Below are positions 1,386 to 4,300 of a DNA stretch of 64,000 nucleotides, one piece after another (the stretch's first letter is position 1; every line of letters starts with the position of its first letter). The position numbers and the translations under genes were made by a program. Where the stretch lies: NCBI GenBank assembly GCA_964188305.1, contig OZ076886.1; one strand, given 5' to 3'. The notes under the pieces are model-generated. The model had not been told where the DNA came from, made no database searches, and worked only from the letters and a program-made list of their open reading frames with translations. Source of the stretch: Podarcis bocagei. Taxonomy: Eukaryota.

Positions 1386-4300
1386 GTAAGAGCACTTCTC
1401 TCTAGCTGCCAATCAATTGCTAATAAAAGCATGGACCTGTTTGGTCAGCTGTTCTGTCATTGTTCTCAAAGCTTGCCATAAATTTGGGCTTGTTGCTTTG
1501 GGCAGCGTTCAACTAAGTGGTTGCATGCTCTGGTACAAGGTCTTCTTGTGCAACATGACTTCCCCCCCATTCCTCCTCCCTATGCCTCCTAAATCTGTTC
1601 TGGTGGGTTTGAAGAACACCCCAGGGCAGGTTTAGGCATAGCTGTCAACGTTTCCCCCTTTTTAAGAGCATTTCCCTTATTCCAAATAGGATTCCTCACA
1701 AGAAAAGAGAAAAGTTGACAGCTACGAGTTTAGGGCGTGTGCAGAGAGAGGAGAGGAGGTGAAAATCTTGTTGCACAACCAGACCTCATTCAGTAAGCAC
1801 ATTCCCCATTTGATGCTAAGTCGCATTTCACCTGAGGGATGGGAAACTCTGCTTATAGGCCTCCAGTGGTGAAAAGCCCACTGCCTCCTGAAGCAGAGTG
1901 TTTCACGCTCAGAAAGGTCTGCACTTAGGATGTTGCTACTGTAATGGTAGAGCGGGCTGCACTAAGGGGAATCAGGGATTGTTAAAAGTGGTCTGTGACA
2001 GAACTATTTAATCTGCTTTAATACTGCAAGCCAAAATTTTGGAATGCACTGGAACAAAATGGTGACAGTCTGGAAGCAGGCTTAGTCTCAGTCTTGATCC
2101 TCAACCTGTGATATCCAAAGTGAACCTCAATGAAAGGCTGACATAGTTTGGCACGGAAGAATCTGTCAATTTTGGTTCTCTCTGTTTCTTGTTTTTCAAA
2201 TCATAAACTCCAATCTCCACATTACAGCATCAGTTTGTGAAGGTTTTTTGTTTGTTTGTTTTAAAGGAAAAACCCTCATGAAAATTCTTCAGCTTTCTAG
2301 TGTGAATTTCTCCTAACAAATACATTTCTATATGCATTTTTGACAGGTGTACACATTTTAACTAGCATTTCCCCCTAATGGAATCTATTTGTGTGTGTTA
2401 TTTTTGTATATAAACTCCTTTTTATACACCCTTTCCCCTAACATATGAATTTTTGTGAACGTTTTTGACTGGAGAACTGCATCACAAAATTCAGATGAGT
2501 GTGAAGCTTGAAGGATAGCTATGTTTCAGTCCTCATATTGCTTTGGAAAGCGCAACTTTGATAAATCTGGCTTTAAATGCAAACTGAAAATTGCTCCTCC
2601 GTCCCTAGTCATAGGCCACTCTGCCCCACCAACCAATTGGGACAAAAGTCTGCACTCACATTGGAATTTCCATTGGCAAGGCTATTTTTTCAAAGGTGGG
2701 GAAAACAAATGAAAGAAAGAAACGTCTTTCTTCAAGATAAGACCTGAATTAGAAAGTGTGTGAACTCCACAGCTATCTTTTATTTGGAGGTGGGCATTGC
2801 TGGGGTCTAGTCACAGCAAGGTTAAAATCCCCTCAGGGGACTCTCCTCCCCAGCCCTCAACTCCAGAGGCTATTTAAAAAAACGGCTTTTCAGTATGAAC
2901 CATGAAACGGCCTATGCAGACAATTATATGGTCTCCTCTGACCTTTTCATAACTCTGTGGCCCCACATTCCACTCCCCCCCCCCCGCTTCCATTCCACTC
3001 TCTCGCTTGAGGAATCTTCCAACTGCCTCCTGCTCCAAGCCTTCCTCTCCTTTCTCTCTCTCCTTTCCTCCTCTGCCACCCTCCCTCCCACTCTGCTTTC
3101 TTTCTTCTTCACCTCTCCCTCCTGCACCCTGCCTCGTGTGTCTGTTCATGCCTCGCTCGCGCAGCTTCAAAACTGGCCCACTCACATTCGGCCTCACTCT
3201 GCGCCCCACCCTGAGCCGGACTCAACTCCCAGCCCCACATGCTGGCCTGCCTCGCCCCCGCTCTCCCCTTGCGCTTTCCGCCCTTTGCTGACTTGACAGA
3301 CGAGGGCTTTTTGTGACCGATGACACCATGTCAGACCACGGCCGAGCCAGTCGGAGAGACAGTGACGATGATCTGTGTTCTAAAGTTTCGTTTCTGCTAA
3401 ATTCCATGTCAGGTCCCAATCCAGCTTCCGAGGACCGTCATAGGTTTTCCTTAGTGGTAAATTCCTCGCTGGATTCCAGCTCGGCCTCCAACACATTTTT
3501 TGCTCTTAATTCAGGACCTAGTTCCTTCGACTCCAGACGTAATTCAGGCTTTCCCCCTCTTCCCAAGCAGCGGGACTCTGATGCCAGCGAGTCTTCTTTT
3601 TTAGCTGTCGCCTTTTCACAATCACAATCACGTACATCTACACCTACAGCTTCACCTTCACCACAAAGCTCCAGGGAGATGAATTTTGTTCCCAGGTTAA
3701 AGAGAAGTTCGTTTGTGGGCACGTCCAGTACTGAGGTCAGGGAAGATCACAAACTGCTTCCCCACCGTGCTCCCTCTAAAAACGCTCCTGTTTCTGACCA
3801 GATCCAGAAACATGTACAGGCCTTTCATCTACCCAAGGAGCAGCTTGAACATGTGAGGGATTCTTTGTATTCAGCCATGCAGAGTAGCCTCAAGGAGAAG
3901 GTTAAAGATGGCCTCGCTTTACCCATGCTGCCTTCTTACGTTTGTACCTTGACTGATGGCACTGGTAAGTGTGCTTTCTTTTTGGCAGTTTGCCTGAACT
4001 GTTGTCTAGACCAGTGTTTCCCAAACTCGGGTCTCCAGTTGTTTTAGGAATACAATTCCCACCATCCAGCTAGCTAGGGATGATGGGAGTTGGAGTCCAA
4101 AAACAGCTGGAGACCTAGTCTAGACCCATAGTCTTCAACAATTTCGGACCTAGGACTTACTTTTAACCCAAGCATGCATTTGAGGAGCCCATTTCTTAAT
4201 TTCCGCCCAATATATCACCCACTGGTGATAGTGCTGCTGTTGTGGTCCACCTTGGATTAGGGGTTCTGAGTGGGTCCTGAGTTGACCCACCAGTTGAAAA

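Follow-up and report, generated by a model that had tools for sequence, protein, structure and literature searches.

The plus-strand segment at positions 3328–3801 of the 64,000-nt stretch of the Podarcis bocagei genome analyzed here (contig OZ076886.1 of assembly GCA_964188305.1; hereafter, the window) probably forms the 5′ portion of the exon with which coding begins in the hexokinase-3 gene (HK3), and this assignment probably extends to at least three distant species. Judging from comparison of the sequences, the segment is very probably translated and continuous with the hexokinase exon that follows it, because the orthologous segments are open in frame and keep the codon phase, their similarity at the protein level is highest in frame 0, and the orthologues have no usable in-frame internal donor. 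The first coding exon of HK3 would then be a single exon of approximately 570–660 coding nt starting at a conserved ATG, in which a Ser-rich and predicted-disordered segment of 134–165 residues runs without an intron into what is elsewhere a separate 163-nt exon 2. The promoter would probably lie directly 5′, near a CT-rich element at 2981–3035, and the product would be a hexokinase-3 of approximately 1047 aa.

The serine-rich reading frame and its orthologues

The start codon has been assigned to 3328–3330 in the context gacaccATGt, with A at −3; the window sequence at this start region is gacaccATGtca. An in-frame TGA (3289–3291) lies 12 codons 5′ of the ATG, the frame being open from 3292 on, and from the ATG 158 sense codons (3328–3801) can be read without a stop directly into 3802–3964, which corresponds to exon 2 (canonically 163 nt) of hexokinases and is followed by the donor G|GTAAGT. 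The remaining two frames of 3328–3801 contain 6 and 11 stops, and 0.13% of composition-matched mononucleotide shuffles of this segment remain stop-free (P = 0.0013); the stop-free frame of 158 codons from accATG, pointed out by the first-pass annotation, is thereby borne out. Ser accounts for 38 of the 158 residues (24%), and the head is hydrophilic. The motifs quoted in that annotation (RRDS, RHRFS, RRNS, KQRDS, and KRSS) can all be found, together with one TP and two SP sites, and Pfam assigns no family to residues 1–158 at E values up to 1. A second ATG, out of frame and in a weak context with C at −3, is located 8 nt 5′ of the main start; its ORF of 26 codons overlaps the main start and ends with TAA at 3398–3400 (window 3320–3400), and may represent a uORF passed by leaky scanning.

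A HMMER search of 1.84 billion representative proteins with the 212-aa peptide as the query gave exactly three matches, all of which are ORFs on genomic Logan contigs of approximately 1.1 kb derived from three different sequencing runs (designated L001, L002, and L003); two of the three align with query residues 15–212 and 11–212, the extension included. The frames preceding the hexokinase exon consist of 165, 164, and 134 codons in the three orthologues and are Ser-rich, started by ATG, and in frame with the exon. A purine occupies position −3 of the ATG in all four species, and a stop is present a few codons 5′ of it in the window, L002, and L003; in L001, the frame is open to the contig start. 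When the orthologous stretches are shuffled, the fractions without a stop are 0.00045, 0.00035, and 0.010; 3–17 stops occur in their other frames. DNA identity between the window and the orthologues is only 65–71% even in the hexokinase exon; the species are therefore so distant that their open frames can be treated as nearly independent of one another, and the joint chance of all four being open is roughly 1e-12. Conservation of the frame in relatives had been proposed as a check of the extension, and it is found open and in frame, with no stops, in three distant species.

Sequence identity of the extension is low among the four species (25–37%), and Ser accounts for 23–26% of it in each of them. 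Motifs common to the four extensions are SKVSF(L/F), P-x-x-E, SSF/L, and PHR, and the invariant positions are K19, S21, S28, P32, E35, S41, N45, S89, S90, S99, P110, and P145-H146-R147. The best-conserved motif is SKVSFLL at residues 18–24 (3379–3399), which includes the invariant K19 and S21 and at which the DNA of L001 and L002 is 100% identical across 18 nt; the PHR motif at residues 145–147 (3760–3768) is found just ahead of the hexokinase fold. Codon phase is preserved in every DNA-level match within the extension, where mismatches are fewest at second codon positions (13, vs 26 and 24 at the others). When the extension alone was aligned locally as protein, excluding the hexokinase exon, frame 0 was the best in all six species pairs, with z = 3.7–11.8 against shuffles. 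As to other resources, a word-index protein search with the 212-aa peptide gave no match, and the same type of search with the four-species alignment gave P0002 as its sole match; the ESM Atlas gave a chance-level match alone (score 0.76), and an exact-sequence look-up of the window ORF returned no record. None of the proteins recovered by the HMMER and word-index searches was derived from a transcript.

We have also examined the nature of this head by running AlphaFold2 on the alignment of the four sequences. Almost every position within residues 1–151 had a pLDDT below 50, with two low-confidence strands over SKVSFLL and RFSLVV, and a better-supported helix was predicted at 170–189 in the hexokinase part, with block means up to 81. 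Together with the Ser content of 24% and the lack of a Pfam family, this prediction agrees with the earlier description of a Ser-rich, disorder-like peptide. The PKA-type sites emphasized in the first-pass annotation do not hold as a conserved feature: the window has three sites of the form [RK][RK]x[ST], with a shuffle P of 0.022, but L001, L002, and L003 have none, and SP/TP sites are not enriched in any of the four species. Among the five quoted sites, Ser41 alone is invariant in the four species; Ser12 faces Ser in two orthologues and Pro in L001, its basic context being kept partially.

The gene model and its assignment to HK3

The chain of exons was built from motif scans, from tblastn of window exons against the window itself, and from AG...GT exons of canonical length. 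The chain is complete with 17 exons and totals 3144 nt (1047 aa), or 1049 aa if the 99-nt alternative of exon 5 is adopted, in agreement with the length of approximately 1049 aa anticipated beforehand. All exons are on the plus strand. The first coding exon, comprising the extension and the exon 2 equivalent, spans 3328–3964. Exons 3–10 of the N-half follow at 5869–6020, 7371–7490, 9247–9339, 9441–9540, 9950–10133, 11593–11748, 12717–12950, and 13718–14022, and exons 11–18 of the C-half at 14549–14697, 14882–15001, 15646–15741, 20725–20824, 21227–21410, 21497–21652, 22453–22686, and 23134–23257, the last including the stop. AG/GT boundaries and canonical exon sizes (163, 149, 120, 96, 100, 184, 156, 234, 305, etc.) are found throughout, the exceptions in size being exon 3 with 152 nt and exon 5 with 93 or 99 nt. 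Exons of each half are assigned to Pfam Hexokinase_1 or Hexokinase_2, and tblastn with the C-half exons recovers the paralogous N-half exons, consistent with tandem hexokinase halves.

Several features of this locus can be mentioned in addition. The intron at 15742–20724, between C-half exons 13 and 14, is unusually long (about 5 kb), its neighbours being 0.1–0.8 kb. Introns of the gene contain simple repeats (7150–7215 and 12520–12560), namely a reiterated 3-nt unit whose translation is poly-I or poly-N and a (CA)n microsatellite, and L003 likewise has a (CA)n run, 5′ of its ATG. The C-terminus is predicted from 23134–23257, the acceptor of this last exon having been picked by frame alone, and the mammalian HK3 tail is a few residues longer than the one predicted here.

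The two halves differ in their catalytic motifs, which are degenerate in the N-half and intact in the C-half. In the N-half exons at 5869–6020 and 7371–7490, 12 divergent residues stand in place of LDLGGTNFR, which the C-half retains, and LCFCFPFPC in place of LGFTFSFPC; furthermore, the N-half has INTEWSSFG, vs INMEWGAFG in the C-half. Because the ATP and glucose signatures are missing from it, a non-catalytic N-half is indicated in this species; judging from these motifs, the N-half is presumably inactive and the C-half intact. PDB matches of two C-half exons are to hexokinases 1, 2, and 3; they identify the product as a hexokinase and do not separate HK3 from HK1 and HK2. Exons of an UNC5-type netrin receptor (Pfam UPA, TSP_1, I-set, and Unc5_NetrinR_N) are located at 27695–40837 on the minus strand, tail-to-tail with the hexokinase gene, and we take this neighbour to be UNC5A, the usual neighbour of HK3. 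Synteny around HXK3 has been described as high in a review (PMC13012417). The degenerate N-half, the hydrophilic N-terminus, and the tail-to-tail UNC5 gene fit the identification of the gene as HK3.

The exon boundary, the upstream element, and competing readings

Pfam Hexokinase_1 is assigned to residues 159–212 at profile positions 2–54, and because it begins at residue 159, the hexokinase fold starts at the boundary 3801/3802. The donor after 3964 scores 10.6, the best among the donors scored, and the same GGTAAG donor is present in L001–L003. The boundary 3801/3802 also coincides with the one between exons 1 and 2 in other hexokinases of vertebrates, and a pyrimidine tract with AG has been kept there in the window and in two orthologues, L002 and L003. 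These features of the boundary speak for a reading in which a second promoter, internal to the gene, drives the long exon as an alternative first exon, and in which this form coexists, in a tissue-dependent manner, with a short-leader isoform spliced to 3802. Alternative first exons are well known for HK1 and GCK, and the window offers only 3.3 kb of upstream sequence, so that a leader exon could lie beyond it. No upstream leader exon was, however, identified in those 3.3 kb; in L001, the boundary itself reads CAC rather than CAG, the nearest AG being 6 nt downstream; and Ser and Pro codons by themselves give a pyrimidine-rich tract. We therefore consider this reading a serious competitor but an unlikely one, also in view of the sequence adjacent to the exon.

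A conserved CT-rich element (CCTTCCATTCCAC...CTTCCAACTGCCT) was detected by blastn at 2981–3035 of the window on the plus strand as a candidate proximal promoter or 5′UTR element. Positions 2981–3035 match L002 3–52 with 76% identity, and L002 2–78 matches L003 45–137 with 72% identity; the distance from the element to the ATG is 347, 344, and 391 nt in the window, L002, and L003, respectively. The surroundings of the ATG are also conserved (window 3294–3337 vs L003 404–445, 78%). Conservation of both the ATG context and the CT-rich element beside the exon would fit a usual first exon with an adjacent promoter, as is the case for a main 5′ end, and goes against an alternative first exon. We infer that the element may act as a promoter or 5′UTR element, and that transcription starts from this adjacent promoter with the long form as the main protein form. 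The second promoter put forward in the first-pass annotation is not supported, as the ATG context, the nearby stop, and the CT-rich element recurring in orthologues fit a usual first exon. No sign of germ-line use was seen either, and the alternative-promoter and germ-line parts of that proposal are not favoured.

Four small assemblies carrying another species label hold 24–35% of the words of 2600–4400, a share comparable to the size of the whole first exon, to which we give no weight because their RNA status is a guess. Three runs (X5–X7), whose RNA status is likewise guessed, hold only 5–7% of the words of the same region, as would result from the 163-nt exon alone, in favour of a short-leader isoform, or from poor coverage.

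According to another reading, the stretch is untranslated, i.e., a 5′UTR or a retained intron whose lack of stops is due to chance or to biased composition, the true start being elsewhere. The region is indeed Ser/CT-rich and of low complexity, and interspecies identity is low; however, the small joint chance of four open frames, the conserved ATG with its Kozak context, the length differences between species that preserve the frame, and frame 0 giving the best protein similarity in all pairs argue against it, and no alternative in-frame ATG yields a complete hexokinase N-terminus. This reading is highly improbable. Equally slight is the prospect of a hidden mammal-like layout composed of a short leader (residues 1–43), an in-frame 345-nt intron at 3457–3801, and exon 2, in which the long protein would result from intron retention: a phase-0 donor-like GTG|GTAAAT with a score of 6.1 is present in the window at 3456/3457, the boundary 3801/3802 resembles an acceptor, and the best-conserved motifs fall inside residues 1–43, but the place homologous to this donor reads ATG TTA, ACA TTC, and GAG GCC in the three orthologues, in-frame donor-like sites scoring above 0 were not found within the extension of L001, L002, or L003, and the supposed intron is open throughout and keeps SSFL and PHR. 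The lack of a good in-frame donor inside the orthologous extensions thus speaks against a conserved intron concealed there, and the intron at 3457–3801 was rejected as its donor is not conserved.

A possible role of the head and comparison with known hexokinases

In the reading that we prefer, a single long first coding exon, the product would carry a flexible, phosphorylatable head at the place where HK1 and HK2 have a hydrophobic mitochondrial-binding helix, with SKVSFLL, P-A-S-E, RFS, SSFL, and PHR as its short conserved motifs. We infer that such a head influences where the enzyme is located, what it binds, or how stable it is, by means of short linear motifs or phosphorylation. A broader proposal, which we advance only tentatively, is that non-mammalian HK3 possesses an ancient and selectively maintained disordered head of approximately 135–165 residues (with SKVSFLL, RFS, SSFL, and PHR) that replaces the mitochondrial-targeting helix of HK1/HK2 and sets location, partners, or turnover, and that this head has mostly been lost or intronised in mammals.

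HK3 is the least understood of the vertebrate hexokinases. If the head is a genuine part of the protein, HK3 of reptiles and perhaps of other non-mammals has a differently built version of the region deciding localisation in HK1 and HK2, and coding sequence bridges the ancestral exon 1/2 intron position. Under the broader proposal, this poorly understood enzyme would gain a lineage-specific regulatory module. Annotation would also be affected because gene models copying the mammalian short leader would be wrong; some automatic gene models likely contain the head already. The head supplies motifs that can be tested experimentally, and the finding is modest in the sense that it concerns one further N-terminal variant of a known enzyme. 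In a 2026 review, HXK3 has been described as an understudied and the most divergent paralogue, found only in Sarcopterygii (lobe-finned vertebrates), and the term N-terminal extension has been used for HK1, HK2, and HK5 only (PMC13012417). Our literature search found no description of an N-terminal or Ser-rich extension on HK3.

Mammalian HK3 resembles the gene described here: it encodes a hexokinase of 100 kDa composed of two halves, the N-half being degenerate, its exons are of canonical size, an UNC5 gene is located tail-to-tail with it, and the N-terminus is not of the hydrophobic, mitochondrial-binding type. The mammalian leader comprises only some 30 residues and is placed on its own exon, whereas the head of approximately 158 residues found here is continuous with the exon-2 equivalent. 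In the spermatogenic and erythroid isoforms of HK1 and in the liver and beta-cell first exons of GCK, a variable part with a regulatory or targeting function likewise precedes the 163-nt exon; however, each of these short leaders has a first exon and a promoter of its own and is used alternatively, in contrast to the extension in the window, which is long and predicted-disordered and runs into the 163-nt exon directly. The mitochondrial-binding helix of HK1, HK2, and HKDC1, which has been termed an N-terminal extension setting localisation (PMC13012417), is found at the corresponding place in its proteins, immediately ahead of the first helix of the hexokinase fold, but consists of approximately 20 hydrophobic residues, unlike the hydrophilic head described here with its 24% Ser and predicted disorder. 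What appears new relative to the known leaders, as far as the sequences indicate, is a long and predicted-disordered head that shares one exon with the 163-nt unit and has been conserved between species.
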